Shown: positions 6,065 through 48,422 of the stretch, one piece after another | Position numbering within the stretch: position 1 is the stretch's first letter | Layout: each line of letters begins with the position of its first letter | Notes under the pieces: model-generated | Database searches by the model: none | The model's input: only the letters and a program-made list of their open reading frames with translations | What the model was told of the DNA's origin: nothing | Translations under genes and position numbers: made by a program | NCBI RefSeq assembly: GCF_037042905.1 | Contig: NC_087246.1 | Coordinates: forward strand, 66,030,001-66,094,000 | Direction: 5' to 3' | Length of the DNA stretch: 64,000 bases | From: Lytechinus pictus | Lineage: Eukaryota

Positions 6065-9000
6065 TCAGAATGTCCTTTTCTCCTGTCTCACGCAGCGGAA
6101 TAACTTCTGCAGGAATCGTGTTATTTTCACTGAGGAGATAAAAAGGGGTGGGGGAGACCGGGGTGTCAATATTGATAGTAGAGAAACGGAATATCAAAGC
6201 GACAATTTTTTTAATTGATTTCTGTATGTTTTTGGAAAATGTGTTTGATGACAATGCTATAATATTGCTATATACCGATACGCTTTCAAACCATCCACTC
6301 ACTTTTCATAATCAATAAATGAATCTACAAAATCATAAATCTGTTCAACATGTTCGAGGTCTGTTATTGCAACCATGGGAATATGATTATGAACTTCATA
6401 TGTTTTGATCATGTCAACTTCTAGTTGAATAAGCCTATTATCTTTTCTCCATTTTGAAATGTCTATGTTATGTACAGGTAATACAACTCATTAAATCTGA
6501 AAAAAAATAATATCCGCATGAGTTCAGACTCTGACGATTATATTCATTCAAATCAATTTTCACCTGTCTTGATGGAAAAAAATAATTGTTAAACATGTAT
6601 GAGTGACGAAATCGTGAGAGTTTTAATCCCTCGGGGCGGCACGAGACCCCACCACCCATGGCAACTTGCACATGTAACTTGAAATTATCGGCTTTAATTT
6701 CCATTCAATGGTTTTATATCTATCACATTAACAGTGAGCTGATATATATTTTTTAATTTACGAGTTACTTTAAATCTTATATTTTTTAATTCATAGTCAT
6801 TTCTTCGAAGGTAAAATAACTTTTGTTAGAGACTTAGCAAAAATAGAAATAGAAATTTACCTGAATATGGCCGGATCCTCTTCAGTTTGTATTTGGGATG
6901 CACCATTGCGTAATAAACCGGGATAGCAACGAAAGCGAGGATGAGCGCGATGCAGTTCCTAAGGGGGTTGGCATATAACGACATCGAAGCAATGAACAAG
7001 AGGGCCGCCATGTAAACGAATGCGATCACAAGCGGAACCTGTGTAGTAATCACGATAAGGAGTGATATATCACTGAAATAGTAAAGATTGGATGAAGATA
7101 TATTATGTTCAACAAAAACACAGCATAAATGATTATGTTGAAGCTTCTTAACCAAGAGATATTAGTATATTTCACAAATTACTTATTAAAACAAGCATGC
7201 TATAAGATTCTTACTTTATAGGGTCGGGGCATGTCAGGGTACTTCCATCGATAGTAAGGCACGATAGCGATAGTAACCGTTTCAAATACGACATCTATAA
7301 ACCCAAGGTATTCGACCAGGACAATGATATCGTCTTCGACGAGGAAGATGAGTGCGATCACACAAGATAATATAGCAGGAAGAGGCGTGTTACGTGAGAT
7401 GGACACCATGGATAAGATCTCGGGGAGGTGACCTTCTCGGGCCGATGAAAACCTTGTCCTGATAAAGAAAAAAAAAGGACAACATAAGAGCATTAAAAAG
7501 AACAACGTCCCCCCCCCCCCATCTGGTATTGGTACATTTTAGCAAAGAGCTCGAAGCTCCTTGATTTTAGCTATTTATCTATATAGTTATGCACAAATCG
7601 GATAAAATGAGATCATTCCAATTTCCTTAATAACGTGTTTACCTTTTTGCTCAATCACTGCTATTTTCGCTTCTTTTTTTTTTTTACTCAGTAATGCACA
7701 GAATATTGCAACAATGACCAGACACCCCCCCCCCTTCAGTGGTGGATCCAGGCGGGGCGCAAGAGACACACGCCCCTCTATTAATAGAGAATTTGCCATT
7801 CATCATACTACATCAATATAACTCAATTAGACAAGGGTTTGGGGATTTTCATTCATTTTTTTTTCGAGAGAATATAAATGCTTTTAGACTGAGCCAAAGT
7901 AGTATGTGTGCATTATTGGATTGACTATAATTCCGACGGCTTGTGTGTTCTAATTGAGGCGAAATCCGTATCAGATTAATCAAGGGAATATTTATCGTTC
8001 TTCTTTTCATGAAATTTCATTTTTTATCATTGCTTTGAATTATCATTATTATTTTTTGTGTGTGTCGTTGATGCTTAGAATCTTTTCATCGTTTAAGACG
8101 ATGATCTTTCACATCCCACAACATGAAATTTAACGTAACAAAGTCTAAATAAACTCAAATCGTTCGTGCGCCATCTATCGTTATATGCAATCGCAATGAC
8201 GCAAAGGGTGGAAGGGGAGGGATATGAATGCGAGTATGAGGTATCCCCCCCCCCCTCGTTACCAATGAAAAAACGGATAAGAATTGCTTATAATTGACGC
8301 CCATATTCAAGGTTGGCAAAATGAGCACTTTTTGTATGGTTGAATAACCTTTTAGTTTCTTATCCTCACGCCATAATTTGTGTTTTCTATGACCCCCACT
8401 GATATATTGAATATTGTATCATAGTGATTTGTATTGTTCTTATTTAAAGTGGAATTGAATTTGAAATTTAGTTTATTTATTGATTCATTTTTTACTTTTC
8501 AAATTTTATAGGAGGAAAATGTCGACTCTGTTTTGGAATTGATTGCCTTTTATCCTATTAAATTCTCGGAAAGGATCGTCGACCAATTTTACTTCAATCA
8601 ATGGTTGACCGTTTACTTTTATATCGACAAGAACAATTTTTTTTTTTGGGGGGAATATGACCCCCATCCTCAGGGGTGTCACTAGGACTTTTCCGGGGGG
8701 GGGGGGTGGAGGCCCTGATTACCGACAAATATCGGTACCGATTACTGACGTCCGGCGACATGATGAGTTTTGAAAGCATTCCTCATTCCCCTTAAATAGG
8801 GACGCACCATTAAATATCCAGTGGGGGGGGGGGGGGGGAGGCTGGAAGTTTTTCAACCAAAAAAAAATATAGTTGCTATATGAGCAAAAAAAAGAAAAGT
8901 TGATTCACCATCAGAGTAAAAACAAACTTGGTCCACTGCCAAAATTCTGAATGAGGCAAAAAAAAAACTTGTCTCTGAGGACTGAGAAAAAAATACTCAA

Positions 9001-12000
9001 GAAGAAAGGGGGGGGGGTTGCAACAACCCAAACTTCCAGCCCCCCTGGGTATCTAATAGTGCGTGCCCTAGTCACATTTCTTTCGTCACACACAGAGGCA
9101 GTACCATCCCCTCCTCCCCCCTTAAGCGACGGCCCTCCCAATCCCTCCAAAAGCAGCCTTTGATATAGGTGTATAATACCTTGATGATTTATAAATGCTG
9201 GTGTTGGTGCTGCCCAATGAAGACATCGCAACAAACACCCAGATCATCCACGACCATCTGATTCCAAGGGAATGGATGCTGTAATCCTGAAACGAAATGG
9301 GGGAAGGGTTGTCTTTAAAGTGAATATTTATTTCGAAAGTATATGGTAGTAACGCATCGCAAGATAGATAGTTCAGAAGTTGTTGATTTCAGTAACTTCG
9401 GCTGCGAAAACTAAAGAGTAAACAGGTCGCATAATAAATAGTGTCCAAATCAACGAGTTTGCCTCTTTGTAGTTCTTTATTGTACTCATCGACCTTGACA
9501 TCGAGGGCAATTATGTGGAATTGTCCTTGGCTTTGGGCAGTCAGTCATTGACATTGTCCTTGATCTTGGCCTTGTCTCTGTGGCAGGCACAACACTGCCT
9601 GAGCTTGTGTAATTCATCATTTACCCCCCCCCCATAAAAGTACCAATGCATAGATAAAAGAAGAAAAAAAATACGAAGTTACAGCTACAAATCAATTACG
9701 AATACAAATCATGAAGAAGAAGAAACAAAACATAAAACAACGGTGAGGAGAACAATATGAAAGACTAAAACGAAGTAATGGAAAAGATTTTATTAAAAGG
9801 GACAGCGACAGTATATTCCGATAGTGGACAATATAAAAGTGACGTCTTTTAGTAGAATAGTACCGAAACTTATTTGTTTTTATCCGTTGTTGTTCATTTT
9901 TCCTTACCACTTCTAAAAAAACATACCGGGGGCAGTGGCCACATTCTTAAAACAAATCAAATTGACTAGACCAGTAGTCAGCTGGGTGCAACTGATATGA
10001 CAATCACTGATTATCACATTTCTGACATATATTCTACGAGTCAGAAAAAACTATGTTTTAGTAAAATACGACTAGAAAATAGTCAAATATGACTAGAATA
10101 ACAGTTGTACCCCGCTGACCCTAGTAACTAGTCATTTGTTACTGTTTGTTTAAGAGTGCACTGCCCCCCCCCCCCCCGTGTGCTGCCCATTCTCATTGAT
10201 GAGGGGTAAATCTCTTACCGCTGCCACCGCATCGGATGCAAGAATCTCATTAGGTGAGAGAAGCGTTAGATAGGCGACGTTGGTCATGAGGTACACCGCC
10301 GTGATCAACGACATCGAGATGACGATGCTCAGTGGAATATTTCTGGATTATGAAAAGTAAAATAATAGCTGCAGATGATTTTTAGTAGGTTTTAGTGTTT
10401 ACTGTTGATATTTTGTTTTAAAAAATCTGCTTTTGAAAAGAACGCCGCCTTTATGACTAACGCTCCGACTGTGCTTTTTGTAATTAACCTCCATTTTCCC
10501 GTTGTTCTTTTCTTCCTTAACTCCGTTCCTTCTTTTTGTCCCTTATTTCCCTTCTCCATTTCAATTCCTTTGCTTCTCTTTCACTCTCATTTTTGCCATT
10601 TCTTTTATTTCCTCTCTCCCTTTCCATTCTTCTTTAAAGGTCAAGTGCACCCCAGCAAAATGTTGATCTGAATAAATAGAGAAAAATCATATTAGCATAA
10701 CACTGAAAATTTCATCAAAATCGGATGTAAAACAGTGATATGCACAACTCAGTGACATGCCAAATCGTCAGTCGATGATGTCCATCACTCACTATTTCTT
10801 TTGTTTTTTTATTGTTTGAATTATACAATATTTCATTTTTTACAGATTTGACCATAGGGACCGACTTGACTGAATCATATTGTTTATATCAAACAATGCT
10901 AATTCCACATGTTCAGGGAGGAATTAATCACTGTTTCACTTGACAATGAGAAGAAAATTAGAATATCTCATATTTCATTTGATAAAATTCAAAAGAAATA
11001 GTGAGTGGATAACGTCATCAGTCTCCTCATTTGCATAACGACCAGGATGTGCATATAACTGTTTTGTGAAATTAAGCTAAACTTTAAAATGTCATAACTT
11101 TCTTATTTTACATCCGATTTTGATGAAATTTTAAGTGTTATGCTTGTTGGATATTTTTCTTTATATTCAAATCAATTTTTGTTGGGGTGGACTTGTCCTT
11201 TAAGAAATACAACCCGAAACTTTCATGGACATGGATGTTGCTTTACCTGGATACGCAGTTTACTGCCAGGATGTAAACAACAATTGTATCTTGTTGCTTT
11301 TCCGAAAGTGCAATTTTAAGAATTGTTTTTATTCAATTCAATTCAATTTAATTCAAAATTATTTCACTTTTTCAAAAATGAATAAATAAATTCCATATAA
11401 TAAAATACAAAATAATAAGTGGGAATATGACATCATCAGCTTGCTAATTACATATTCATGAAGAAATACATATATAATTGTTTCGCCGAAATATTGCAAA
11501 ACTTTAAAGATCCGATTTTGATGAAATTTTCAGTATTGTAATTTTCTGATTGTAATTTTTCTGTATAATCATAATATTTCAAACCTTGAGTACCCCTTCA
11601 ATCTGAACCCAAAGTAAAAAAACAGATAATAGTATAAAAAAAAAACGTTGGACGGTGAATACTGTAAATTGTCTCGACGACTTACCGTGCAGGGCTCTTT
11701 ACTTCTTCTGTGATTGTGGTGACAACGCTCCTGAAAAAGAGAAAGTATGAAATCAATCAATGACCCCTTTGCGGTAGTCACTCTTCATCTACAGCTGTAT
11801 ATATGAGGTGAGGTGACAATGACGATGGTCAAATGATGACAGTCACGTTGTGGGGATAATAATAGTGGTGATGATTTTTCTTATTATTTGATGGTGATGG
11901 GTATGAGGTTGGTGATAATGATCGTGTTGAAAATAACTATAGGCCTCATCGATGACGTTGGTGACAAAAAGGGATGCAAGAACTAATCCTACTACAGTGA

Positions 12001-12942
12001 CTAACCTACTACCGTAACTAATCTACTACCGTGACTAATCCTAGTACCGTGACGTAACCTACTACCGTAACTATAATCCTACTATCGTGACTTATATCCT
12101 ACTACCGTGACTAACCTACTACCGTAACTAATCTACTACCGTAACTAATCCTACTACCGTGACTAGACTACTACCGTATACTCCTACTATTGTGAATAAC
12201 CTACTACCGTGACTAACCTTCTACCGTGACTCATATCCTACTACCGTGACTAACCTACTACCGTGACTAACCTACTACCGTGACTCATCCTACTACCGTG
12301 ACTAATCCTACTACCGTAACTAATCTACTACCGTAACTAACCTACTACCGTAACTAATCCTACTACCGTGACTCATATCCTACTACCGTGACTAACCTTC
12401 TACCGTGACTAATGTACTACCGTAACTAATCTACTACCGTAACTAACCTACTACCGTGACTAATCTACTACCGTGATTAATCATACCGTAACTAATCTAC
12501 TACCGAGACTAACCTACTGCCCTAACTAACTAATCCTACTACCGTGACTCATATCCTACTACCGTGACTAACCTACTGCCGTGACTAACCTACTACCGTG
12601 ACTCATCCTACTACCGTGACTAATCCTACTACCGTAACTAATCTACTACCGTAACTAACCTACTACCGTAACTAATCCTACTACCGTGACTCCTATCCTA
12701 CTACCGTGACTAACCTACTACCGTGACTAACCTTCTACCGTGACTAATCTACTACCGTAACTAACCTACTACCGTGACTAATCTACTACCGTGATTAATC
12801 CTACCGTAACTAATCTACTACCGTAACTAACCTACTACTGAGACTAACCTACTACCCTAACTAACTAATCCTACTACCGTGACTCATATCCTACTACCGT
12901 GACTTACATACTACCGTGACTAACCTACTACCGTGACTAATC

Positions 12943-12985
<43 letters not shown>

Positions 12986-15900
12986 AACATCTACTACTGC
13001 ACTTCGCTAAAAATGCCCGGATCATCAATAATTCAACAATACAACGCTTAAACTGATGAGAGGGTGAAAGATCATAGGAATCAACATTGATATTTTTACC
13101 ATAACGCAACTGTAGCTATAAAGTGCACAATAAAAAATTCAAGTTTAGTCCATCTAACATAATTATATTTCAACTGCAAGACATCTGAAAGCCAAGGGGA
13201 AGCGTTTGAACGATTTGTAGGCTTAAGATAAATTTTCCCCAAAGCTCGAGCCCAAATTCATGCTTGGTAAATATTTCACCGTATTTAGATATTTGATCTC
13301 ATGATGGCTAACTTTTAATGCAATGATTTAAACCGAAAAAAACATTCAAGAGGGAGGTTTAGTAGAGCCGAATGTGTTAGCTTCCTGTCAATCATTCTCA
13401 TAATTCTCCTGATTATTCAATTCTAAACCTTTGAAGCAATTCACTATAGACTACAACATAACAAAGAAAGGCACAGGAAGGGGATCTGGATATACCTATT
13501 GTAGACTGACATGCTAAAGCTATAGAAAAATATACCGTGGTGCTCAAAAGTTAGTGAACCCTACCAGAAAATGAAGATATTTAGAGTGTTCAAGTTCTGC
13601 CATGCTTTATATATTTGATTGTGAAGTCAGGTGATAAATATGACCATTAAAGTTTGTTTCTCTGGCCTCGTCGAACAATGTTGTCTACATTCAACACTCG
13701 GAATGAAGGAGTGAATTTGTGGTGGGGTTCACTAACTTTTTTTTAATCACGATTGTACCTTTCAATCCGCAGTAGCTCCATGGTATTATATTATGCTTAT
13801 AATTATGCAGGTAATGAGTCCAAATCTTTGAGGGTTTCATGGTTTCAGGCGTACAGGGAAAATTTTCTTAATAGTCGCGGGAATAGGAAACAAGTCGATA
13901 TTTGTCGAGATGCGATAAGAAAAAATGCGATAAAAATGTGTAATAAACGTGAAGTGCCTATAAAGAAATGCAATGTATACAAGAAACAAAGATGAATGAT
14001 ATTAATGTTGTCATGAATATATCATCCCGATACAGGCTCGCTTAAAGGGCGAGAAGGGAGACTATATAATGAGACCTCAACTAAATGGAAAACCGTATTT
14101 TGCATCGTGTAATGATAAAACTCATATAACTTGTTATACCTGGTGAATAAAATATTAATCTATCAATCAAAATCTTTCTACTGGGAGTAGGATGGATGGT
14201 TCATTGATACTACACCATACCTCTTTCAATAGGTATTGAAATATTTCATGTACCTCGATATATTTTGACATTCTTAAACGATGATTCATATCCATTCAAA
14301 TGTGAAGAGAAAAAATTGTCACCCCCCAAAAAAATACATATATATATATATTCACTAGCAAAAAGAGCCTCTTCTGACTGTTATCATCATTGTTATATTG
14401 TTAAGATCATCAGAAATCATAATCATATAATCATAACCATAATCTTATTTATTATCAGCATTACATATCATGATCATGATGATGATCATCATCATTATCG
14501 TCATCGTCATTATCATCATCATTATCATCATCACTAACGACTACACCATAATCATCAGTATTATTACCATGAGAGTTGAGAAAGAAAATTCATTATTTCC
14601 TACCATCCGTTGTAAGCCCATAACCCCGACAGAAGCCCAGTTGGTAGGAGAGCCGGATCGTATGAGGCCAAGCTGAAAGGCTCCCGAAAATTTGAAGTAT
14701 AACCTGTATTACAAAAATGGAGTAAACACCAATACACAAACGGTTACGTGTGAAAATAATTCAATTTTGAACAAGTGCTAATTATTCAGAAAATAATGTA
14801 TGATTTCCCGTCAATTATTATAGAATATACTATAGAGATGTCTCATCCAGAACCTTTTGATATAATTGTTTTGTAAACGAATGCACCTATTAACTTGCGC
14901 CAAGTATAAGCTGTCATACATCGGGAATATGAAGAGGCCCCCATTGACATTCTATTCCAATGTTGTATTTTATGACGAAATTTATGGTTTATGAAAATCT
15001 CTGAAAACTAGTTAAATGAAATCATGTAAAAGCAATCGATGCTAATAACGATAATATTGAAAGATAATATCGAGCTTTACTCTGCGATGCAGACTGAAAG
15101 GGTCCATAGGTAAAATAACTGGAATAGCGATGCCGGGATTGGGGAAGGGGTGGGGTTTGGGGAAACTGGACCCCCTACTTTCAATGACTAAGAACCAAGG
15201 AAAAGGGAGAAAGGGAAGAGACGCCAATGAGAAGGGAGCAAAAAAACCCACGATATTATTTTGTGGTTATAATTTCAAAAATCTATCACAAGTTAGGTTT
15301 TCATTCTAAATATGCCAAAATTTTTGCTAGCTTGATTTAAAAAAAAGAAATTTGCCCCTCAAAATCTTTGGCTTCTTACGCGACTGTGAAAACAATCCCA
15401 TTAGTTCTTTATGTACAAGAATTCAATTGCCGTATTATGATTGACGTTACATCGAGTTGGAAATCCAGGCCAAATCCGTGGCTAATTGAAAAAGTTTCGT
15501 TTGCGGTGGGGGAAAAAAGTATTCAGCTATCGGACATGATCGATTGCCAGCTCAAACGAAACTTCTTTCATTTTGGGATATGATTGTATTCACGTCGAGT
15601 GAGAATCGGAAATATCCATCTTGTAATGAAATACTGGTACAATTTTGAGACATACTCTCAAACACCGTCCCAATTGCCAGTGGGGAGTAGGGAGAATGGT
15701 CAATTGTTACATCAGAGAAAGCTTCCCACAATAGCTATTGAAACTTGGCGCACCTCGACTAAAGAAAAATATTTTCCTAACTGTTAATAGCATACCTGGT
15801 ATGAAATATCTTTTTTTCTTCAAGTCGTTCGTCAGTGTATACAGACTGATTTTATCTATACGTTGACTGACGATTATATATATAACCCTTTTCAACTAGG

Positions 15901-18417
15901 ACAACGTGCAAAGTATGTTTTCTTTTCCGCCGCATTCCGGCGTAATAATTCAGACTGTGATAAGTGGCTTTCCTATTAAGAAAATAATTTAGATATGTAC
16001 CTTTTGACAGGTTGTACATCCCGGTTACAATAATGATGGCGAGTCCAACTACCTTTGTTACACTTAGGGTGCGTTTATCCGCCACTTTTTTACCCTATAA
16101 TCATGATTCCAATCATGATTCAAATCACGATTCTGCAGAATCACGATTGCGTTTAGTCGAAATTGAATATAATCATGATTAGAATCACAAACATGAACTA
16201 CGAAAAAAAGGGCGTTTGGAAAGACGTTTCTGCAGAATCACGTACGAAAATGTTCGGATAAACGATATCGTGATTTGAATCATGATTATATGACGTCATT
16301 GTGTCGAGCTATTTCCGGTTCTTGCCAAGGCGCGCGCCCCACGTTGTCACATCACATGTACGTCGCCGACCTCCAATTAAGTGTCCAACGTTGACCTATA
16401 CTTCCTGGGTCAAACTGCGCACTGTGATGCGCACTGGATCGGTCCGAATCCGAGGAGAAACAGCGTTGGAACGAAGGTCGTCTAAACCCTGATTCTGTAG
16501 TAATTGTGATTCATGTTTGTGATTTGAATCATGATTCCAATCATGATTCAAATCACGATTCTGGCTTGAGGTCGGATAAACGCAGCCATAGTACCCCAGC
16601 CAGTCTGGATGCTAAACGAGCACTGATACCATTCACTGCCAGAACAAAGACTGAAACAAAACAAAAATATTCTGGATCTTTTGCTTATTTCAACGATGAA
16701 AAGTTAACATATCATTTAATATAGCATTATGTTATATCATACGTTTCATGATATGACATTTCCAACTCATATATAACCTTCTGTCTTTTCAAAAATAAAA
16801 CTGATCAGAAGTCCTTGCTTCTCATGCATGCGTAGAGACCCTCACAGTTCATATGTTTTGAAGATAAGTAAAATCCCAAAACAATCTTAACAAAACACTC
16901 TTAAAATTAAATCCTGCAGCCCTACATTGGGTCATAGACATTTATAAAACTTAGATCTACTATTCCTCCGGATCGAAGTTTGAAGCTATAGTTATCAGCA
17001 TTAGCAAAAATTATCAGCATAAGATATCAGCATTATCATTGACATGACACCCAGTCGGTTTAGAGACAGTTCCGTTGGAGTGGCTGTGGTAGCAGTTTTC
17101 GCAACAACTACACAGACGCTTTCTGGAACGTAGATAATCTATTGTCAAATACCCTTCGTGACAATAAAGTCATTGTCGACGGTCAGTGAACCTAAACAGC
17201 AGGTTTGTCTGTGACTCTGGATAAACGACATATTTGCGATTATTCGTCAGCTCTGAAATATCGGACAAAACTGACTCACTGACCCTCGACAAAGGCTCCG
17301 TTGTAATTGACTTGCATTTTCAATGTATTTTCTGCGTTATATGAGTCATTCCGCATAGTTGAGCGAAAACTAGCTATTGTCTTGGATTCAAGGGAACAAT
17401 ACCAAACTTGTAGACCTACAGGGACGGAAGATTCGTATTGATAGTAATTATTCTATCGCAGGGCAATTTGATTCTTAAAGAAGATTTGGGACGTGCACGG
17501 TTTAGCTAACTCACGGAGGAAGAGCACGCTAAGGAATTTCAAAGACACGACGGGCACTTCCTCGCACTGGAAAAAGGGCGTCAGCAGGTAGTTTGAGATG
17601 GTGGAGATTGCAACAGCTGCTCCACACGGCATGATGACGGTTTCGAGGGCCCAGAGCCTGATAAAAGCCACCAGGGGTCCCCAGGCCTGGAGGATGAAGG
17701 TGAAGTCCCCACCAGACTTCTTCATGATGACAGCTAGTTCGGCCATTGTGAGGGCGCCACACGTCTGAATGATGGCGCATGCTATCCATAGGATGAATGA
17801 AAGGCCTACGGATCCTCCAGCACCACGAAGGACACCGGTCGGAGAAATGAAGATCCCCGTCCCAACCACAAGACCAACCTGTTTTAACAATATAATGATC
17901 GTTCAAAATATGCGGCTACCTCTTATTATGATTTACAACAACGAATCATATTAATCCATGAACACAGACTATATCCCTAAAGATTAAATAATAATTAATA
18001 AATGTAAAAATTAACCCCAAATTGTCTTCAGATTTGACATTAGAGTATGAAGACAAACAGAGTATCTATTATTTCACATGAATGTGAGATTGTTTTCTGT
18101 TCTATATAGATATCAAGTTTGTTGCTTCTTCAACAGGTGGCTGTATCCTTGAGGGGAATTAAACAATAAAACAAACATTCCTCAAAATCATTCTTCCAAC
18201 ACCTTATGTTTGAAAGTAAAACCCTACAGGTTACTGCTGCCAGTCACAACCAAAATATCCTGTTCTTAACTTTATCAATTTTTTTCATTCATCTAGTTAG
18301 ATGATCAACTATCTACTACTCACAAAATGACAGATGCAACCAAAAATTCCAAGGTGTCGAGGTATGGCGACTTTGTCCTTGCATTCATCTTTGCTATCTC
18401 CGGCATCTTTATCATTA
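6065..18417 (-). CDS. SLC7 family L-type amino acid transporter light chain (paralogue A); one coding exon interrupted by a MITE (possible null allele/pseudogene)
   Basis: Exons in transcript order, all GT-AG and phase-consistent: 18417-18324, 17878-17515, 16650-16001 (split by MITE 16067-16587), 14703-14604, 11730-11686, 10342-10219, 9286-9180, 7458-7215, 7038-6861, 6129-6065 (stop TGA). Motifs: [25 protein letters not shown] (heavy-chain disulfide Cys), TM5 Lys (SVTK), [40 protein letters not shown]; ends QEKRTF. Most exon lengths equal those of paralogue B. Confidence 0.9.
8799..9068. mobile_element. MITE with GGGACGCACCATTA terminal inverted repeats
   Basis: gggacgcaccattaaatatcca ... 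gggtatctaatagtgcgtgccc; second copy at 56852-57110. Confidence 0.75.
9940..10138. mobile_element. Small foldback MITE
   Basis: Imperfect inverted arms (cttaaaacaaa..gactag..agtcagctgggtgcaactg / cagttgtacccgctgacc..ctagtc..tttgtttaag). Confidence 0.55.
10638..11199. mobile_element. Kolobok/T2-type MITE
   Basis: TTAA flanks (10634-10637, 11200-11203); TIRs AGGtCAAGTgCACCCCA..AAAA / TTTTGTTGGGGTGGACTTGTCCT. Confidence 0.8.
11985..12997. repeat. Minisatellite of ~16-19 bp CTACTACCGT(G/A)ACTAA units grading into (CTA)n
   Basis: Directly visible tandem array in an intron of paralogue A. Confidence 0.95.
13535..13755. mobile_element. Tc1/mariner-type MITE
   Basis: TA flanks; degenerate TIRs cgtggtgctcaaaagttagtgaacc / ggttcactaacttttttttaatcacg. 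Confidence 0.6.
14440..14535. repeat. (CAT)n microsatellite
   Basis: Direct observation. Confidence 0.85.
16067..16587. mobile_element. PIF/Harbinger-type MITE inserted in a coding exon of SLC7 paralogue A
   Basis: TIRs GGGTGCGTTTATCCG / CGGATAAACGCAGCC; 3-bp flanks TTA (16064-66) and ATA (16588-90); internal AATCATGATT palindromes. Removing the element plus one TSD restores a 126-nt exon, the same length as paralogue B's. Confidence 0.9.
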
Positions 18418-18774
18418 CTGGCAAGAATGTTCATAGAAAAACAATACACATCAAACACCTTTAATAACGGTCATAAGGATTTGATATTATCATTATTCAA
18501 TGAAGCATTTGAAGACTTGAGGAGTTCATGATATTAAGACATAATTATACACGCACACGTTCACAGAATTCAATGTTAGTGGTTTCCATGGCAATGAGTG
18601 TATAGACCTATGTCATTCTGATTAGTTTCACCAAGTTTTGACTTTAGATTTCATCTTCAAACAGCCATTTCAAAGAAGCTACCGTCCGGATTCACCACTT
18701 ATTCTACAGCCAGTCGGTGTATTGATACATCATTCGGCCTAATATGCCAAATGACAAATATATCAAGTTGTTAT

Positions 18775-19110
18775 TAGACTAAATGGATGTAGACTAATGA
18801 TGATAGACCGACTGAGGTTAAACAAACCGACAATGGACCTAAATTATGTGTACACCGTATTGGTAATAAAATAAATTGGTTTTATTGATAGACGAAATGG
18901 CAATTAGACCAAATAATGATGGACCAAATCGGTATTAGACCAAATGGCCCTAAGACGAATCGACTATAGACCAAATAGAGATCAAACCAAATAACACTGA
19001 GACCAAGTAATAATTGGACGAAATGATGACTAGACCAACTGATTATTATATTAACTGATATTAGACCACACGATGTTAGACCAATTATTGTAATAAACAC
19101 GTTAGACTGA
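18775..19110. repeat. Degenerate array of short TAGACC-containing units (probable MITE subterminal region)
   Basis: Many tagacc/tagact motifs at ~17-20 bp spacing. Confidence 0.55.
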
Positions 19111-21088
19111 TGATGATAAACCTTTCCAGACGATAGCCTTTTTGAAATGGTTGTTTGAGGTTAAATATTGATTCAAATTTCGTTGAAAGTATTCAGAATG
19201 GTGTATTTTAAAAAAAGGTCCCAACGCAGCCTTTTGGCAAAACGGGGGGGGGGGGGGGTTGAACGAAAGGTGGAGTTCCCGATTAAACGCTACGTCCCAC
19301 TCTTTCTGTACAAGCCGTCATCATAGCTGCAATACTTTATTGTGTTTATAAAGGCTAATCAAAATTATAACTGTCAAAGATTCCATCGTACGGGCATGAC
19401 ATCACATCAGCTCGCTCACTACATTTTCATAACAATAGGCATCTAACTTTCCCAATGGACAGTTCGAAGCTTAAAATTTCAATAACAAAATTTGATGGAA
19501 TTTCAAGTACCGGCTTTATCAAGTGTTATTTCAATTATGAAAATAAAATGTTATTCAGTTATATGGAATTAAATGAATCTAAATGAAGGGTTTAGAAAAA
19601 TAGAAAGATAAATAAAGTTCAACAAAAGAGAATATGACGTGATAAAAAATAACACAGAAACATGTTAACTGAATTTCGACGATTAACGTGCAAATGTATG
19701 CTTCTGTAAATGAAATTGAAAATGATAGTTAGGACGAAATCGAACGATTTTCCTTTGGTGCTAAGTATTGAATGACAAGTTTGAATGAATTTCTCTCTAA
19801 ATTGAATTTCAAAAAAAAAATAAAGGAATGATATGAAACGGAACTGGATACTAAAAAGATGAAAATGAACCGTGGGTGCAGAGAGTTGCCAAAAATCGTC
19901 CGAATTTATGCATTAAGTTAAATGAAACTGTGGTGATATTGTACGGGCACCTTTACCACTTATGGTTTGGTTATAAATCATTATTCTTAATTATAGTGGG
20001 GGTTTTCTTTGTCAGAGCACCCCAGTAACAATAAAAAGTCCTCTGTGGCCAGGTCAATGAATGATGATTATACATGGCAGCTTTTGCATGAATTGACAAT
20101 ACAGAGTCCGCGTTTCAGAATATTTGACCAGCCACTCAAAAACCAACAATAAGTCGCCCAAAATGAATTTTAAATTTTAATATAGTTTGAAAAAACACAG
20201 CCATAGCTTTAAAATGACATATATAGTTTGTCTAAATTGATCAACAATAACCACTTAAATACTTGATTGAATGCAGAAGAAACAAAGCATGAGTTTCAGA
20301 GAGAAAACAACTTGTGAAGATTGTGTTACTCAATAATGAGATGTGCGCACTGTGCAATTTCAATTAAATTTTCAAGCAGTCCACAAAAACTTGTGTCAAA
20401 CAAACTCTTGTATCTTGTCTTCTAAGTGAGTTTACAATTCGAAATTTTTACAGCATAAAGAAGAATAAATACTCCTTTGGATAAGATAATTTTAATTTAT
20501 GGCTTTTGAAGACCAATTTACTATTTTGACTATTACAGAGAACCTTCCCTGGCGACTTATTGGTGGAATAAGATATAGACATTTTAAAATAGGGATTGGC
20601 AAAATGAGCATACTTTTGGCTTATATGTTTCCGACCGAGAAAAATGGTCCAAATCAACCAAATTATTGGTTGAAATATACTAGGAATTTGGTTGATTTTG
20701 ACCAATGTATCTGTCGTATCAACTAAGAGAATGGTCGTTTTGACCACTCGGCGTGTAGGCCTACGTGTCGACATCCGCACATACAGGCGCGCCGGAACAC
20801 TTTCAGTTTTTGGGGGGCAAAATCCCGAAGGGGGCACAATATTTTTGACAGCGTGAGATACCGAAGCGATCGAGCGGGAGAGGGTGTGGGACCCCCCACG
20901 GTAAGGACTTTGTGTAAAAATGGAGTATAAAAGTTGCGTTTCTAAGAGCATTCAAAAATAAATTTCTTGAGAATTATACATAGAATTTACTACGAAAGAC
21001 TATACTCATAATTTATGAGAACCTATGAAATCTACGCGCAAAACGATCGCTTCGGAATGTGGTTTTCATGTCTGATCAATTAACTTAC

Positions 21089-21135
21089 GTATTACGCTTA
21101 TATTGACTCAAAATACCAGAAATTACATTTTTCAT
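21089..21135 (-). CDS. Candidate first coding exon of SLC7 paralogue A
   Basis: ATG at 21135-21133, open for MKNVISGILSQYKRN(T), ending AC|gtaagt in phase 2, the phase required by the 18417 acceptor. No homology support, so tentative. Confidence 0.3.
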
Positions 21136-23188
21136 GCAATATCCTTTCAGAAACATTTATTTATGTACATTTACATACACGGACGACGCGAGAGAGCACA
21201 ATCATCATAAGTTTCAAGTAATTCTTATCAGAACAAGGAGTAAGCAGAAGAAGCGTAACAACAGAAACAAAAGAAATTATAATGAATGTCTTTTCAAATT
21301 CAAAATGTCATACTGTTCTGACGTGGCAGACGTCGATAAGCACTTAAATCCCCATTCTATGCAAATCATTTCTGACATCAGCATTGGAGATAGTCCCTGA
21401 TTATCCATGCATGGGCAATACGTTTCATATTTTGTAACTTGAGGAAAAAGAAATATGACAAGCTTAATTGTCTAACAATTTAAAACTTTTCTGAAAATCA
21501 TTAAAGTTTAAAACATTACTCGATTTATGTGTTTCCTTTTGCATGTTTTGTATGGCTGGGAAGCACTTTTGGATGACTCCTTAAAAATCTTCTTTTTTCT
21601 TTACATATTTTTTGGGGAAAATGTGACCATAACTAGTTTTGTTTCCTCCCTATTGACCCACACTGGTGTTTCTTCATGACCAGGGTCGCAGTTCCAGCAA
21701 ATGACGAGCCTGGCAAACGAAATTGTTTCAAACCAAAGTAATATAGGCCTTTTAAAGACTTTGAGATGGCAAACATGATCGTACGCAGCCGGGGGCCGCC
21801 GATCGAGAGAGCAAAAATTCACAAAATTCACCAAAAGTGTGCACGAAATCCTTTAATTTTATTCTAGAAAATGCAAAAGCTCCCCCATCACAAACCCCTC
21901 GCTCTTAAGTATCTTCGAAAATTTAGGTCTTGCAGCCCCACCCACCCCCGGATTTTTTTAGATTTTTGCATACATCCATGAATAACGAAAGCTGGGATAA
22001 ACCAGAGAACATAGCTGCCTCTCGATCTGATTAGTAACAGGTAATGGGAAGGAGTCTTGGAATCTAAAATACAAAAGTGCTATATCATATGAGCTGAAAT
22101 AGTATCAGACAAAACGCCTGCCAATCATGCCAATGAAAAGGAATCGAGGAAAATACGGGGCTATGAAAATAGTAGAGCAGTACTGTAACGCTTATTTTTC
22201 TTTTATATTCTTTATTTACATTTTTATTCATATCTCGGATAATATGATTCGGATCAAGGAAACACTTTCACAGATGATTTTATTAAACATTATCTCTAAG
22301 TTGCTTTCGAGTGGGATTCACCATTTTCACAAATTATAAATTATAATCCTCTACACATAATTATTCTGTGTGTAATTTTCTGATAACATGTCTATATTGA
22401 GTTGAAATGACCTTGGTATTTTCTTTAGGGCACTGACTTGTTATCATTGTATTAACTCAATTTATATTTAGTTGAAATGAAATAATTGAAATAAGTTTTC
22501 ATAATTTAAATCTATATCTTTATTAATCTATACTTACCATTTCAGGGATGACTTACATAGGCAACAAGTATATGAGATATTGACGACCTCGAGATGTTAT
22601 GCATGGTTTCTGGGCTTGACAGCTATGACATAGATTCCATAATAGTTGCTCGAGTAAACGCGCGTTAGTGATATCGGGTCCGGTCTGAGCGTTTCTGGGC
22701 GACCGCGCGTTTGTTAGCCGACACAGCCAGCATATGCATTGGTGTACAGCTTTCAATTTGCCATTCGGTTTTAGTCTGAAATGTATTCATTAAAAGGTTA
22801 AACGTTATCACGATGTAATAAGATGGAAAAGGGGCTAATTAAAGGTATGTTTCACAGAGGGACATGTTCGTCAAAAGACGCGAGGCTTAGTACTATTATG
22901 TCAGGGGCGAAATGTTTTTATTTTGACAATGGAAATGACAATTTTTAGGCAGAAAAGTGCCTTCATCGTTTACTTTTGTCCTTAAATAATTTATCAGTTT
23001 TCTTCTTTTGGGGGGCACATTGGGGGGGGGGGGCAAAATCTCGTTTTGCCCCCCCAAATTTTTATTTGGGGGGGCAAGTGCGCCCCTGCCCCCCGCTTCC
23101 GGCGCCCTTGCGCACATACACCCTATCACCATGGAGCTACTCCGTTAGTAGCTCCATGTAATCAAGGAGCTTCCAAGCTCCTTGATGG

Positions 23189-23225
<37 letters not shown>

Positions 23226-23809
23226 CGAAAATAAATGTATGAATTAATAAATACATCGAACGAACATTCATTTTTTCCCTGATATTTGCCTTGCCCCAAA
23301 TCTGAAGAATGGATCGACGCCAAAGAAAAACAACGATTTGTCCGGGAAAAGCTAAGGCGTTTAGGTAAGACGAATGTTAAGGTAAGACGAATGAATAGAT
23401 ATCAGTCATTTTAAGTTAGAATTAAAGCAAAATTTGAAAAATAAATAAATCGAATTAACGAGCCCATTTCTCCATAGTGTAAATTGCTTGGTTTTGAGCC
23501 ACGTGAAACTGATCTTGATGCTGAAACAGAGATTGAACATGGTAGTTTTCTTTATATTTTAATAAGGGCATTAAATGAGGCACTTACCGGTATTCCATAT
23601 CGAGAGTAATATGCTGCTGATGTTCGTGATGTTATTGGAATGTCGTTGTCACAATCCGAAAACACTGCGAATGGTCAGGAAAAATCAGCTCGATTCCGTA
23701 CGTTACACTTTATTCGTGATCGAATGTTAGGCTTCGGTGACTTCAGTGATCATTCAGTTCACGATGAGTAATTCGAGGGTCATGAGGGTAAAAAAAAAAC
23801 ATGTGTTTT

Positions 23810-34000: not shown

Positions 34001-37000
34001 TTTAAACTTCTCGTTTAGACTATACTAGGATTAAACCTATAGGTTTTATTATCAGAATACCCCAGTGTTTTTTTTTCTCTCTCTCCAGCTGCGAGAATGA
34101 TGTCGCTATCAAGCACGAAGAGAAAGGTTCTGATTCGAGCGGCAAAAAAGTGTTCATCCCACGACATATAGGTTTACTTGGCGTCATCGCCCATACGGTA
34201 AGGATTCATTCAGGTCCTTGTGTTATCCCATTGTAACCTGTTTACATTATCGTAGGGTTGCCCTAGGTTGATTGTACCCAGCTAATCGTACGATGATACG
34301 ATCGCCGTAGGGTTGCGTACGATGATCGTAAGAATTTCGTACTGATTCGTGCTCAGTAGGTCGGATCTATGAATTTATCTTATTTTATTTTTCTGGCGCG
34401 AAGGTTTTTTTTTTATCATAATATTGCAGCCTGTATGTGGGCATACGATCAGCATAGAAACATTACACCACAATTTAGGGGCGTCGGTCAGCGCAAAGGC
34501 GTCGAATAATGTACCGACGTACCATCCGCGCAGGAACATTGTATGATCTCCATAAAGCCTCCATAATTTTATGCATGGATTTTACAACTTTGACCCTCTA
34601 CAATACCGAATTTAAGAAATCGCAGTATATAATGTAAACTAAAAAATAATGTAACCAACTGCGATGCCACAAAAACCCAAAACAAACAAATCCGTAGACT
34701 CATCCATCGTAGGATGATCCTAGCAAATATAAATGAGGCATTATGATCCTGTCTACATTGCCGTTTGAATAACGAATGCGTAATTATTGAACTTTTTAAT
34801 TGGAACTTCAGATGGTTGGCAGATACTTATTTTCTGTTATCCGTGAAATTGAGAGAAAATACAGAATTAAAGGTGTCCTCACACTATAGCAGCGGTTGAG
34901 TGTTGGTAACGGTGGTCAATTAAAAGACTCAATAGACCATTCTAGACAGCAGTCATCGTAAACCGTATGAGGGCAAAGATGATGATGATGGTGTGGTGGT
35001 GATGGTGGTGGTGGTGGAGATGATGATGGTAATGATGATGATGATGATGATGATGACGACAACGATGATGGTAGTAGTGGGGATGAGGATGAGGTAATGA
35101 TGTTTAAGATGTGATGGGGTTGACAATGATGAAAGTGATGATGTTGACGACGATAATGACGATGCAGATGGTAGTGGTGATGATGTTGATTATGATGATG
35201 ATGATTACGATGATGATAATGATGATGATTACGATGATGGTAATGATGCTGCTGCTGCTGATAATGGTGATGGCGGTGGTAGAGACGAGTATATATCTTC
35301 GAACAATTCTTGCCACATAACACCAAATAACATTATATTTTACACTCTCTGTTACTCCTGTCGGTCGATACCTTCATACATGATGTAGGTTGGAGCTGTC
35401 ATAGGGACTGGTATCTTCATCTCTCCAACGGGTGTGTTGCGAGGAGCAGGAGGGTCGGTCGGTCTTGCTTTCATCTTCTGGATCGTTTGTGGCATCATCC
35501 AAACCTGCGGATGCTTCATATACACAGAACTGGCGCTGATGTTCCGCAAATCAGGGGGTAAGACAACTCCACATCCAGAACTATACGGGAACTGGGTCAT
35601 CATCATGATCATTCAAACAAAAAAATGTACTGTGATCTGCCATACTAGTCATGCTAGCAATAGATATAATCTAGTATGGCTATCAGTTATTTACTGCTGG
35701 AAAATTATATAGTAGCTTGCTGTAAAGTAATAATTACAGTATATTACTGTGTAGCAGAGCGGTTGTCTGATTTATTTCATAATTTATACACTTGCCATTT
35801 CCCCTATTTTAGATTATTTTCTGCTACCGATTCTTATGATTTGTTTGTATTGCAAAATTTGTGTTTCCGTGTATATGTCTAAAACATGCTCAAGATAATA
35901 TTAATCATACTTGCTAATGGAGCGCCTTACACACTATTTAAAAAGAAAGTGTAGAAAGGGGTAAACAACCTTAAACAAGGGCCAAGAAGTGACAGCGTTT
36001 TCAATGAGGATGGAGAACGCTGTCACTCCTCGGCCATTCTCCACTCTTTCCCACCCGGCCTTTTCGCCGTTCGTGTTTTCAGGGTGCAGTTATACTTCAT
36101 CATGAGTCTACAAGCACTCTTCAATAAGACAGCCATGGTTCATTATGTATTAAGACAAATAGTATCTATTTCTCTCTTTTTTTGGCAGGTGAATTTACTT
36201 TCATGTTAGAGGGATGGGGGCGAGCTGTCGGTTTCTTAAAGCTCTGGACCATTGTGATGGTTAATGCGTCCTCTGTGGCGATTCAGGCACACGTCGTTTC
36301 TCAATATCTCCTGACGCCATTCTTTCAGTGTGTCGATCCACCGGTTATTAGTTTACGATTCATCAGTTTTTGCGCCATTCGTAAGTAAAAAAAAAAAAAA
36401 GAAGAAGCTTTTTCCACTTAGATTTCACAACCTATTCAACTAGCATAAATATGAGGACACTGCCTGCGGCGTCCCCCCCCAAAAAAAAAAAAATCACTCA
36501 TGACAATTATTTTATACATTTCGCCCCATTATCAGATGCCATGGAACGGTTTTGAAAGTGGGGGATGAGCCGAAAGTGGGTGGGGGCTGACCATGCAAAA
36601 ATTCACAATCAGAAGGTAATTGTACGTTTTGTATGCGGTTTTGGAACAAAATAAATTTTGTCAGTGAAAAATTAACACTTTAACGGTTTACAGTCCTGTA
36701 TAACTTCATAAATTCGATCGTTTTAATAAGAATTCTGTATATCTCCAGTGTCATTAAAATAAAGAAAACAAATAGATAAAGAAATAAATAAAGAAATAAA
36801 TAGATAAAAAAATAAACTTTAATATATGGATGAGATATAAAACAAATATACCGGGCGTTTCTTTCGAAAGTGTAGTGGAAATATTTTATCCTCGGTTGGT
36901 CCGGCAATGTTACTATTTTCCATCTGGGCTCACCCCCCTCGGGAAAAATAGTAATTGCCGAACCAACCTCGGATAATAATATTTCCACTTTACTTTCTCA

Positions 37001-40000
37001 AACCCGGTATATTTGTATAATATGTGAAGTGAAATTTAAACTAGATTTTAATTCGTCATGCGGACGAATTAGGTGGTCTGTCCTTATTCTCGCCATCATG
37101 ATCACCATTACCATGTTCCAGCAGATCAATATGATCTTCATGATGACAACGGAATGTTCATTATGGATGGAATACTTGTGAAAGACGGGAGATGATAAAG
37201 CACTGTGAAAATGGTCTCTTTGATATATGACAATACATGTGATATGAAAAAAGTAATTATAGTCTGTTTTATCTTGCTAAATTTTAACTTTTATACCTTT
37301 TAATTAACATAAAGGATCATGTACGAGGTGGTAAAAAAGAAAAAAAAATGATAAAAAAATCATCTTGTTTACCCCAGGACTCGAACCTGCGCCCCCGAGA
37401 ACGCAAGTCAAGTGCGTTATCCATTGAGCCACGACATTCCCCATAGAGATTACACGTAAGCAAATTTGAGAATTGCAAATCCAATTTTGCAAGCGAAAAA
37501 CGGGCATGATCCCGGCATCTGATCAAAAAATGGAGGGCACACTTCCGAAAGCTTAGAATCTCAGCTACAACATTTTAAAAGCTCAGAGACAACTGACAAG
37601 AAAAAGTGGAGATATAGCTCACGAAACAGAGGAATGTAGAATCTAGTTTTGAGAAAAAGTCATGTCCCATAGAGACTACACGCAAAATGAGGAAAAATGA
37701 CATGCCTCTTTTGATCGCTATTTTACGCCATGATGCGTTTTTCAAAATGAAATTTCATGCCAATTCAGGAGAATGAGTACATTCTAAACTACAACATATC
37801 GAAAATTGGGCGAAAATTGACCAATATTCACGGAGTTAAAGCCTAATTTGCATAATTATTATGACGTCATAACAAGGAAAATTGATATTTTAACTTCCGA
37901 CGCCATTATGATGACGTCATGATCAAATTGAGGGACAATGGTGACATGAAATCAAATCTACAACTCATACTCTATCGATATATGAAAAAAAAATGGGGGT
38001 CAACGCACTATTTAAAGAGCTACAGTGAATTTTTAATAGGCATGTTTTTGCCCATATATGGCCTATAGTAAGAGCTCGCGCGCACACGTGCTGCAAACTT
38101 TAACGGGTGTTAATTTCGTTATTAATGGTCGTAGAAGGTTGATGAAGGTATCAAATTGCTCAGAATTATATTATCAATGCAATGATATAAAAAAAAACGG
38201 CGTTTCTGTGTTGCGTTGAAGGCGTTACGCGCGGAAACGCGCGCGCATACGTGTGCGTGCGCAAATTTTTGAAATGCTTAAAATGACCTAAAACGTACTC
38301 TACTTTGGTCAAAAAGTGATTTTGAGCAATTTAAAATTTTGACGAGCGCGTACGCGCGCGTCGTGACCACCAGGTGACCTTTGATGACATGAACTGTTGA
38401 CCCTTGACCTGAAATTAATGTGATGTAAATATTGGTAATTTTTGATAATTGATAATGGAGATATGATTGATAATGTGATTTTACAAAATGGCGTCTAGAT
38501 GACGTCATCATGACCTGATGACCTTGAAAATGTTATTTTCACGTCTTATGACAATCACCTTTGACTGTGCCAAAATTGAAAGAAATTAACAAAACCGATC
38601 TGGAGTTATCCTAGGAACAAAAAATTGGCGGAAATAAAAATAAATAATAATAATAATAATAATAATAATAAAGAAGAAAGAAAATTCTGACAAAACTAAT
38701 AGGTGATCTGTCGTTGACAGACCACCTAAAAAGTATGATAGTTGCTATCTGCTCTCTGAAATGTAATTAAGTTTAAGGCCAATTTGACACTGACAAAAAG
38801 CTGATTTGATTTTGAATAAACATCAAAAGATTAAACAAATTCAATGCTGAATATTTCGTCAAAATCAAGTGTAAAATTAAGTTACCGGATTTAAAAAAAG
38901 TCTTTAATGACGTAGAACTGAGATTACAGACCCCTTCTGATAATACATCAGTTGATGCATTCAGTAGTTTACAAACATTATCTTTACCCGAATGTGAATT
39001 TAAATCCAGTGAAATAAAAAAAGATTACGTTTCTAAGGCATTGTCAAACATTGATTGTTCAAATGCCGTTGATGTAGATGACACACATCCTAAGGCCTGC
39101 TGTTCCTTTTTTAGTAGAACCATTGGTATATATATGCATTATGATATTGTGAACATGTACCATTCCAAGAGATTTAAACGATTTAAAGACGGCAAGAATT
39201 ACTCAAATACATAAAGGAGGATGATGTCGATAATATTAGACCGATATCTGTTCTACCTGCCTTGTCTAAAATATTAGAAAGAACAATCCACAATCAACTT
39301 TATGAATACTTGAATGAAAATAAACTGCTAACGAATTCCCAGTCAGTTTTTTGTTAGACCTTTGCATTCTACTACTACATGTCTAAATGAAATTACAGGC
39401 TATCTGTAATGGATCAGGGGCGAATGATGGGAGGTATTTTCCTCAATTTACGTCAAGCGTTTGATGTTATACCACATATTACTTTCATTCTTGAAAAACT
39501 GAAGTATAATGTAATTGAGGGTAACGAACATGATTGGATGAAAGCATATTTTACATACAGGAGACAGTTTGTCGTAATAAATAAGTGTATCAGTAAAATT
39601 AGTTCAGGCGTCCCACAGGGATCCATATTGGTTCCATTAATATTTTGTATTTTTATCAATGCTATATGTAACTTGAAATGAATGTTAATTCTAAAATGTG
39701 TCTTTATGCAGATACTGCTTTTTTGTAATGATGTATTATCTAAAAACAAAAATCTGCGAAGTGATTTTGATGTTATATGTAACTGGCTCAACCTTAACGG
39801 TATGCATTTGCATAAAAAATGCAAAAGTCATGATTCATCCCCGATGAATGGAAACATGCTAAAGTCACTCCAATTCACAAGGGGGGGGGGGCATAACTAT
39901 AGACCTATATCTGTTATCCCTGTGGTTATGAAAATATTTGAAAGACTAGTTCATACCCAGGTTCCAGACTACTTTTTTGGAACATGATTTACTAGCTAGT

Positions 40001-43000
40001 GAGCAGTCTGGATTTCGGAAGAATAATAATAATAATAATAATACAGGTATATTTACCCAGGGAAGCCGCTTCAGTTCCGAAAACTGTTCTCCCAGCGGGC
40101 CCTGCTATCGCTCAACTAGCACGGTTCTTACCTATTTAAGTGATCATCTGTACACGCAAATGGATCATGGTCGACTGATGGGAGTTGTGTTTTTAGACCT
40201 CAAAAAGGCGTTTGACTCAGTCGACCATGATCTTTTGCTTCACAAACTTACCATGTATGGAATTCTTGGAGCAGAGTATAATTGGTTTGAGAACTACCTA
40301 AAACATCGTTCACAGTGTACTTCTGTCAAAACTTTTTCCTCTGAATTGAAAAAGGTACAAACAGGAGTGCCTGAAGGCTCAATCTTGGGGCCTCTCCTGT
40401 GTACTTTAATTTATTTATTTTATTTATTTCTGAAAATTTGACAGGGTAGCCCATTCACCAATAAGTAGTGGTCTTCCATGGGGCCCTGAATAACAATAAA
40501 CATATTTACAAAATGCATAACGTATGTACAGAATGTTACGGCATTAAGATTCACATTATGATTTGAATGTAAAACGAAACATTAACAAACTTAGCAGCAA
40601 ACAAAACGCAGACGGGCACTCGTTTGACGTATAATCAAATATCAATAAATCAAATTAACTAAGAACGACATCTTGAAAATACTGATAATATACATCAAAT
40701 CATCAAGGTCATGCTAACACAAAATACGCACAACAGTGGATGTTCCGCAAGTTATTCATAAATTACAAGTTCTTTTAAACATTCTCTTAAATGAAATGAC
40801 AGAAGGAGCTGTTCTAATTGAATTATCAAGCTTATTCCATTCAAATATTGAAGAAACAATTGGACTACACTTATAACAATCAGTGCGAAACTTGGGCACG
40901 CGTAAATATCCACTGTCTCTCTGTCTGGTATGATGTTCATGTACATCATTTGGATTGGTTAAGTTTACCTGAAGGTAAGAAGGTGCTAAATTATGAACAC
41001 ATTTATATATCATCAAAACGTGACTGAGCTCAAATCGTTTGTCTAGTGTCATCCATTTAAGACTTGCGAACAAATCAGCCGACGGTGTGTCGTATGTCTT
41101 GTTCAATATTATTCTTGCAGCCCTCTTCTGAATTTTTTGCAGCTTAATATTATTGTATGGGATTGAAATCTATTCGACCATACAGCAGAACAGCAATCAA
41201 ATCTTGGCAACACTAAACTGTTATAAAGCAACTTTAAGGACTGCACAGGCAAAAAACTTTTCGCTCTCTTTATTATTCCAAAACTTTTCTGAGTAAGTTT
41301 ACATACATTTTCAATTTGTTTTGACCATTTCAGTTCTTCATCTATCAAAACTCCTAAGCATTCAGTGAATTGAACTCTATTTATCAAATCACCGTTTAAC
41401 GAAATCGTGAAAGAATCTATTTTCCTGAGATTAGCACGAGAACCTATTATCATGACACAAGTTTTTTCAGTGTTGAGGACGAGCTGATTATCTTTAATCC
41501 ATACCATGACCTTGTTTAATACAACACTTAATTTTTCTTCCAAAACTGTCGCATCATTCGCACTGATGGTAAGTGTCGTGTCGTCAGCGTACATATCTCT
41601 GGTGAATGACATACCCAATGTTCTTAAGAAAATAATGTACGATCATGCTGGTGACACTGCATTAATGTTCAGCGCTAAATGTACTGAAGAAATTGAAACA
41701 AAAATCAATTCAGATCTTCAGAGAATAAGTCAATGGCTAATATTAAATCGACTAACACTAAACCCTGAAAAGTCGAAGTGCATGTTATTTGGTACCTCTA
41801 ACAAACTAAAAAATTCAGATCCCTAAAATGTGAAAGTTGATAATCATGTCCTTGAAAGAGTTTCAAATTTCAAATACTTGGGCACGTGGTTCGACGAGTC
41901 ACTCACCTGGCAAAAACAAGTTGATGAAACGAGCAAAAAAATTGGCTCACGTATTGCCTTATATAAGTAGACTAAGAAAGTATTTAACTATCGATAGTGC
42001 CAAAATCCTAGCTAATGCCTTGATAACACCTCATTTTGACTACTGCAGTCCTTCCTGTGCTAACTGTTCAAAATACATAAAGGATGCATTCATTGCCCAA
42101 CATAAGAAAATGACAAGACTTGTCCTTGGACATGTTGGATGCAATTTCATGACACCTATTGTCACAACTGAAATGGGTAAACATTGAACAAAGATGGGAA
42201 TTCAACAAATGTAAATTAATGTACAATGCACTCAATGGAATGGTCCTTAATATATTTCTGATATGTTTACTAAAAGTAATAGCGTCCACACTCACCGTAC
42301 GAGGGGTGCCACCTCACAAGGTTTGCTGGTACCTATATATGGTCAAAACACAGATGGGGAAAAAGTTTTTCTCATGAAGGGTCACTCTTGTGGAAAGGAC
42401 TTCTTCCAGCTCTTAAAAATGCAACAACCAAAGAAGCATTCACCACCTTATACTGGAGGCTAGCAAAACTCCTGAGGGGTTGTAATTACTTGTTTATGCC
42501 GTTGTTAGCTCCCAGTGAGTGTAAATCGTGCACTCTGTTTTTTTAATAGCAATCCTATGTAATTTTGTATTATTATGAAACATACAATCACTATTGAATC
42601 TTTAATGCTCATATTATCGTTATGTTATATATCATATGCTGTGTGAAGTAAATGTAAATAATTGTTATTTAACTATAATGATATGATTCAGTCCAACGAA
42701 TATTGATTAATAATAACCACTCTGTAGTATAAGTGTAATGCGCATCTTTTTTTTAATTATAAGCAAATTGTGTATCCGGGATATACTCATAGTTCTTTCA
42801 GTGAGGTTTTTTTGTATGATTGATCGATTTCTAAATTCACACTTGCAAATTCACTAAATTGATAAGTTTTTAATTATAAAAACGTAGTAACCTATAATGA
42901 AAATACATACCTATCAATTTTTTCTTGTTTTCCTGTCAATTTCCAATACTGCTTCCTTTTTCAAGAACTCAAATCATTTCTCTCTAATCGTATTGAAGTG

Positions 43001-48351: not shown

Positions 48352-48422
<71 letters not shown>

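Follow-up and report, generated by a model that had tools for sequence, protein, structure and literature searches.

The window analysed here, the whole 64,000-nt stretch of Lytechinus pictus contig NC_087246.1 from position 66,030,001 to 66,094,000, contains an SLC7 gene on its minus strand (6065–23598; gene A), which RefSeq names 'Y+L amino acid transporter 2-like'. The gene A model was built from the joints of RNA contigs together with homologues. It comprises 11 coding exons: exons 1–4 at 23598–23588, 18417–18324, 17878–17515 and 16650–16001, exons 5–8 at 14703–14604, 11730–11686, 10342–10219 and 9286–9180, and exons 9–11 at 7458–7215, 7038–6861 and 6129–6065. All introns are GT-AG and the frame is open over 485 aa once 524 bp within exon 4 are removed, in agreement with the first-pass annotation, which had seen no lesion in the other exons. 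The 485-aa model is 99.8 % identical to RefSeq XP_063951515.1, and the protein is 79 % identical to the 'cystine/glutamate transporter' of S. purpuratus. One gene A exon matches PF13520 (AA_permease_2; E 1.4e-12) and xCT (E 1e-27), and PDB matches to xCT, LAT and y+LAT range from E 1e-27 to 1e-20. By homology, gene A is a predicted amino-acid transporter of the SLC7 light-chain type (xCT/LAT/y+LAT-like). It resembles the SLC7 light chains (xCT, LAT1/2, y+LAT1/2 and b0,+AT) in its PDB and AA_permease_2 matches, whereas it differs from them in belonging to what looks like a sea-urchin-specific expansion of the family, with at least three paralogues on its chromosome.

Paralogue B (about 34087–52778, plus strand; XP_063951516.1) lies head to head with gene A, and the two are about 49 % identical. 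Its 126-nt exon at 43793–43918 (plus strand) is homologous to exon 4 of gene A. A third SLC7 paralogue on the same chromosome (P0161) is 69 % identical to gene A. Paralogue B carries a 630-nt GT-AG intron (35560–36189) in KSGG|EFTF, at a place where the coding sequence of gene A is unbroken, within a single 364-nt exon (17878–17515). A transposon origin of this intron was considered and rejected, as its GT-AG sites are strong and terminal inverted repeats (TIRs) are absent. A separate repeat within a gene A intron (17094–17380) belongs to an older family, with at least 40 genome copies at 74–80 % identity, and occurs frequently in the RNA runs.

Coding exon 4 of gene A extends from 16650 to 16001 on the minus strand, between the acceptor tttcag| and the donor |gtacat, and is split in two. 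The 5′ part, with the first base of a Leu codon, is located at 16591–16650; the 3′ part, which starts with the remaining two bases of the Leu codon and ends one base into the following Gly codon, is located at 16001–16066. The split had been attributed at first reading to a 521-bp element with 15-bp TIRs and TTA/ATA flanks, and this was reproduced. Exon 4 without the intervening 524 bp (16067–16590), that is, the element and one copy of its target-site duplication, measures 126 nt, exactly as the exon of paralogue B, as had also been calculated. If the element is retained, the first in-frame stop is the TGA at 16555–16553 (minus strand), 11 codons past Leu177, close to the ten or so codons first estimated.

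The element occupies 16067–16587. On the forward strand its left TIR, GGGTGCGTTTATCCG, lies at 16067–16081 and its right TIR, CGGATAAACGCAGCC, at 16573–16587, and the two are complementary at 14 of 15 positions. The left copy of the target-site duplication is TTA (16064–16066), which corresponds to the ancestral target as judged from the L. variegatus site and from the 3-bp duplications of the family; the right copy is ATA (16588–16590), with a mismatch to the target at 16588. The GC content of the element is 43 %, its longest stop-free stretch is 68 aa, and six AATCATGATT palindromes are found in its subterminal regions.

The first 40 nt of the element have 154 exact matches in the L. pictus genome, against 0 for the reversed control. 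A search for full copies found 969 candidates, of which 40 were scored, and 40/40 were identical over 521 bp; the genome thus has 40 or more copies with 100 % identity across positions 1–521, located on ten chromosomes. Exact recurrence of 521 bp at 40 or more places means that the match is not due to chance. Thirty copies were compared with their flanks, and no substitution was found in 30 × 521 bp. Perfect 3-bp duplications, directly at positions 1 and 521, border 21 of the 30, and 14 of these 21 duplications are TTA or TAA. An alternative delimitation, a 522-bp element with a 2-bp TA duplication, was rejected because the other copies have 3-bp duplications directly at position 521.

The TWA-biased 3-bp duplication, the short TIRs, the absence of coding capacity and the dispersed near-identical copies are those of a PIF/Harbinger-type MITE, which upholds the Harbinger-type assignment of the first-pass annotation. 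At least 40 identical copies, together with 3-bp duplications that are mostly TTA or TAA, point to a very young, non-autonomous member of this group, and the dozens of base-identical copies indicate that the family was active very recently. The insertion into gene A is itself recent, as first proposed: the element does not differ at all from at least 39 other copies, and the orthologous site in L. variegatus lacks it. A profile search returned at least 150 DDE_Tnp_4 transposase matches in the genome, many with open frames; searched to a distance of 1.5 kb, the 30 best of them showed no TIR of the MITE. Two of the copies (L019 and L009) are nested in reverse-transcriptase open frames of other repeats.

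Mismatched 3-bp duplications occur in 9 of the 30 identical copies, the copy at 16067–16587 included, and 14 of 90 base pairs differ overall. In the mismatched cases the right-hand copy often begins with A. Ordinary mutation does not explain mismatched duplications beside copies that are free of substitutions. They may stem from imprecise integration, from repair in which ectopic copies caused conversion, or from errors of polishing at the edges of repeats.

Two in-frame splicing events that would rescue the reading frame had been set out in the first-pass annotation, and both exist on paper. A GC-AG removal from 16586 to 16063 restores the frame and gives Cys178 (cacATAgta). A GT-AG removal from 16594 to 16095 (GGG|gtacta...ttatag|GGT) is likewise in frame and adds 8 residues (+GKKVADKRT). 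Skipping of the 650-nt exon 4 would also keep the frame, with a loss of 42 residues. The rescue sites had been called weak, and measurement bears this out. The GC-AG donor, ATG|GCTGCG, agrees with the consensus at no position from +3 to +6; the pyrimidine fraction of the corresponding acceptor is 0.45, compared with 0.50–0.90 in nine native gene A acceptors; and the GTACTA donor of the second event is weak.

The first of these events is present in the current annotation. The RefSeq proteins XP_063951515.1 and XP_063951514.1 are identical to the gene A model except for Cys at residue 178, and the RefSeq protein is exactly reproduced from the window, first exon included, only with 16586 to 16063 taken as a GC-AG intron. 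Cys178 in these proteins therefore indicates that the annotation modelled the MITE as a 524-nt GC-AG 'intron' (16063–16586, minus strand).

Four sequencing runs were compared with positions 14400–18600 of the window, three of RNA (X15, X1 and X20) and one of DNA (X27). De novo L. pictus RNA contigs spanning exon 4 were recovered from two independent studies, one of 2157 nt at a depth of 16.9 (X15) and one of 656 nt at a depth of 6.1 (X1). Both drop the neighbouring introns at CT..AC, which is GT-AG on the gene strand; removal at these canonical sites identifies the contigs as cDNA. Both also lack 524 bp, at about 16065–16588 with 3 ambiguous bases, and their flanking pieces show 0 other letters. 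The junction reads cacTTAgta in both, which encodes Ser178. Four equivalent cuts of the assembled allele give TTA, with gene-strand ends TG..TA, AT..CT, TA..CC and CT..CC, and none of these is a splice pair. Because the two copies of the duplication differ, GC-AG removal would leave cacATAgta (Cys178) instead, a junction that was not seen in the X15 or X1 contigs.

An empty cacTTAgtac site in a related species had been suggested as a check on the insertion, and it was found: the orthologous locus of L. variegatus (L035) reads GGGGTACTAAGTGTAAC, uninterrupted, and its TAA/AGT is the same. The older L. pictus model XP_054762088.1 has Ser at residue 178, as do L. variegatus and S. purpuratus; of the proteins compared, the current L. 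pictus RefSeq entries alone have Cys there. Judged from these sequences, the TTA/Ser178 empty site is the ancestral, uninserted state. We infer that the empty-site transcripts derive from MITE-free DNA, the MITE-free L. pictus allele being deduced from the RNA, the older RefSeq protein and the sister species. The assembly holds no empty-site haplotig, as the unique flank at 16591–17500 matches only itself. A search of transcriptome assemblies with P0160:100-300 found no truncated or variant proteins. The raw RNA run X20 has zero reads on any gene A exon and so is silent on the inserted allele.

The same runs contain other members of the MITE family. A variant with an 85-bp deletion (window 16418–16504) is present in RNA contigs of both X15 and X1, evidence of transcription from a deleted subfamily somewhere in the genome. 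Transcription of the family elsewhere in the genome is also evident in X20, and the reads show many further variant positions. The DNA run X27, which bears a third organism label, yields MITE pieces covering 16065–16556 at 99–100 % identity and none of the flanking gene; one 311-nt MITE contig from this run has one difference. Either low coverage has assembled the repeats alone in X27, or the family is common to another species.

The first-pass annotation had raised the possibility that the MITE is a nascent intron. The spliceosome would then remove the MITE and one copy of the duplication at the GC-AG pair, which is formed by the terminus of the MITE, the duplicated TAA and the flanking G, and would leave a working transporter with Cys178 or, if the duplication were perfect (TTA/TTA), with Ser178. 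Such a removal is exactly in frame and has been adopted by RefSeq, and a survey that starts from annotated introns and validates them with RNA-seq tracks has reported introners from S. purpuratus, also a sea urchin (PMC12130899). The RNA junction is TTA, however, not the ATA expected from the assembled allele; the only transcripts without the element carry the pre-insertion TTA/Ser, and no canonical pair yields TTA from the allele as assembled. The TTA junction excludes splicing only of that allele. From a perfect TTA/TTA allele, use of the same GC-AG positions (AAG|GCTGCG...CCCTAAG|T) would give an identical Ser mRNA, a product indistinguishable from the X15 and X1 contigs.

Several further observations count against a nascent intron. 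The ancestral sequence has Ser178 and no insertion, and insertion polymorphism is ordinary for a MITE family this young. The donor lacks the consensus bases at +3 to +6, and the pyrimidine tract of the acceptor is poor. A survey of other copies for exonic insertions with splicing had also been suggested; in the 30 identical copies, a sample considered without annotation, a host coding exon is hit by one alone, that at 16067–16587, and the family thus gives no sign of tolerance in exons. Splicing of the MITE as a new intron is improbable on this evidence.

Partial rescue would make the inserted allele a hypomorph, through cryptic GT-AG splicing with 8 added residues or through skipping of the 650-nt exon with 42 residues lost. 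Both products are in frame, and large exons that bear transposable elements are often skipped. Against this, the GTACTA donor is weak, and in both products a membrane-spanning segment of the APC fold would be changed or missing. Neither the +GKKVADKRT junction nor the skipping of exon 4 was seen in the X15 or X1 contigs or in the reads of X20, a run with no reads on gene A exons, and the second rescue foreseen in the first-pass annotation thus finds no counterpart in these contigs. A hypomorphic allele of this kind is very unlikely.

The insertion could also be foreign to the germline, as an artefact of assembly or polishing or as a somatic event in the sequenced tissue. The imperfect TTA/ATA duplication, the uninterrupted form as the only one in public RNA and the lack of a second haplotig in the assembly would all fit such an origin. 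Yet the boundaries are base-exact and match those of 40 other copies, the insertion site is the preferred TTA of the family, and, with nine copies in 30 flanked by mismatched duplications, that feature is shared across the family in this assembly and is not peculiar to this locus. A non-germline origin is the least probable of the readings weighed here.

A recent insertion polymorphism, with the MITE on the reference haplotype and an intact gene expressed elsewhere, is with good confidence the best account of the locus. A young PIF/Harbinger-type MITE would have transposed into a TTA at codons 177/178, in coding exon 4 of gene A, on the haplotype that became the L. pictus reference. The uninterrupted gene A would be carried and expressed by other animals or by the other haplotype. 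On the inserted allele the MITE is predicted to stay in the mRNA, so that the frame would run 11 codons into the MITE and stop at the TGA. The product would be about 188 residues long, without the conserved AYNGW segment or anything that follows it, and the transcript would likely be subject to nonsense-mediated decay. Loss of function is the predicted outcome, and the inserted allele is presumably null; the first-pass annotation had taken a null or hypomorphic allele as its default, which was sensible. The SLC7 paralogues on the same chromosome may buffer the loss of gene A.

Under the insertion polymorphism, the GC-AG intron in RefSeq is most likely an artefact, produced when RNA of the uninterrupted allele was aligned to a reference that bears the MITE. 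The aligner would have preferred a GC-AG gap with one mismatch to a non-canonical gap with none. On this account the locus illustrates cleanly how a reference that carries a polymorphic transposon can acquire an annotated GC-AG intron and a spurious Ser-to-Cys change. By itself the insertion is an ordinary event, a young transposon that has probably knocked out one allele of a member of an expanded transporter family. A recently active Harbinger-type MITE family is of relevance to L. pictus as a species under development as a genetic model. For surveys of intron-generating transposons the locus is a caution, not a new mechanism, and introner claims in species this polymorphic should be based on RNA and DNA of one and the same individual. 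Were the nascent intron true after all, this would be an animal intron observed at its very origin and still polymorphic, with a working transporter and a correct RefSeq model.

Among known systems, the Ds and dSpm alleles of maize waxy, adh1 and bronze are transposon insertions that are partly spliced from exons. The L. pictus locus is similar to these alleles in having an exonic element with cryptic in-frame sites near its ends; it differs in that no spliced product was observed.

Introners are DNA transposons that generate introns (PMC9860276; PMC12130899). The L. pictus MITE shares with them its nature as a DNA transposon in a coding exon, a removal that would restore the frame and an intron annotation in RefSeq. 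Introners are removed from transcripts at splice sites that the element and its duplication supply, whereas the mRNA seen for the L. pictus locus has the pre-insertion sequence cacTTAgta, which no canonical splice pair can reach from the assembled allele. The putative sites are also very weak. Introner families have many copies as introns in unrelated genes; by contrast, the gene A copy is the only one of the 30 sampled that lies in a host exon.

A further likeness is to the Tourist-like or PIF-Harbinger MITEs, for example mPing of rice, which have short TIRs, no coding capacity and 3-bp duplications of TTA or TAA. The L. pictus element is like them in its burst of identical copies, some of which lie inside genes. 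It differs from them in being an echinoderm element of 521 bp, with a TIR of its own and the AATCATGATT subterminal palindromes, and in the mismatched duplications that flank thirty per cent of its copies.
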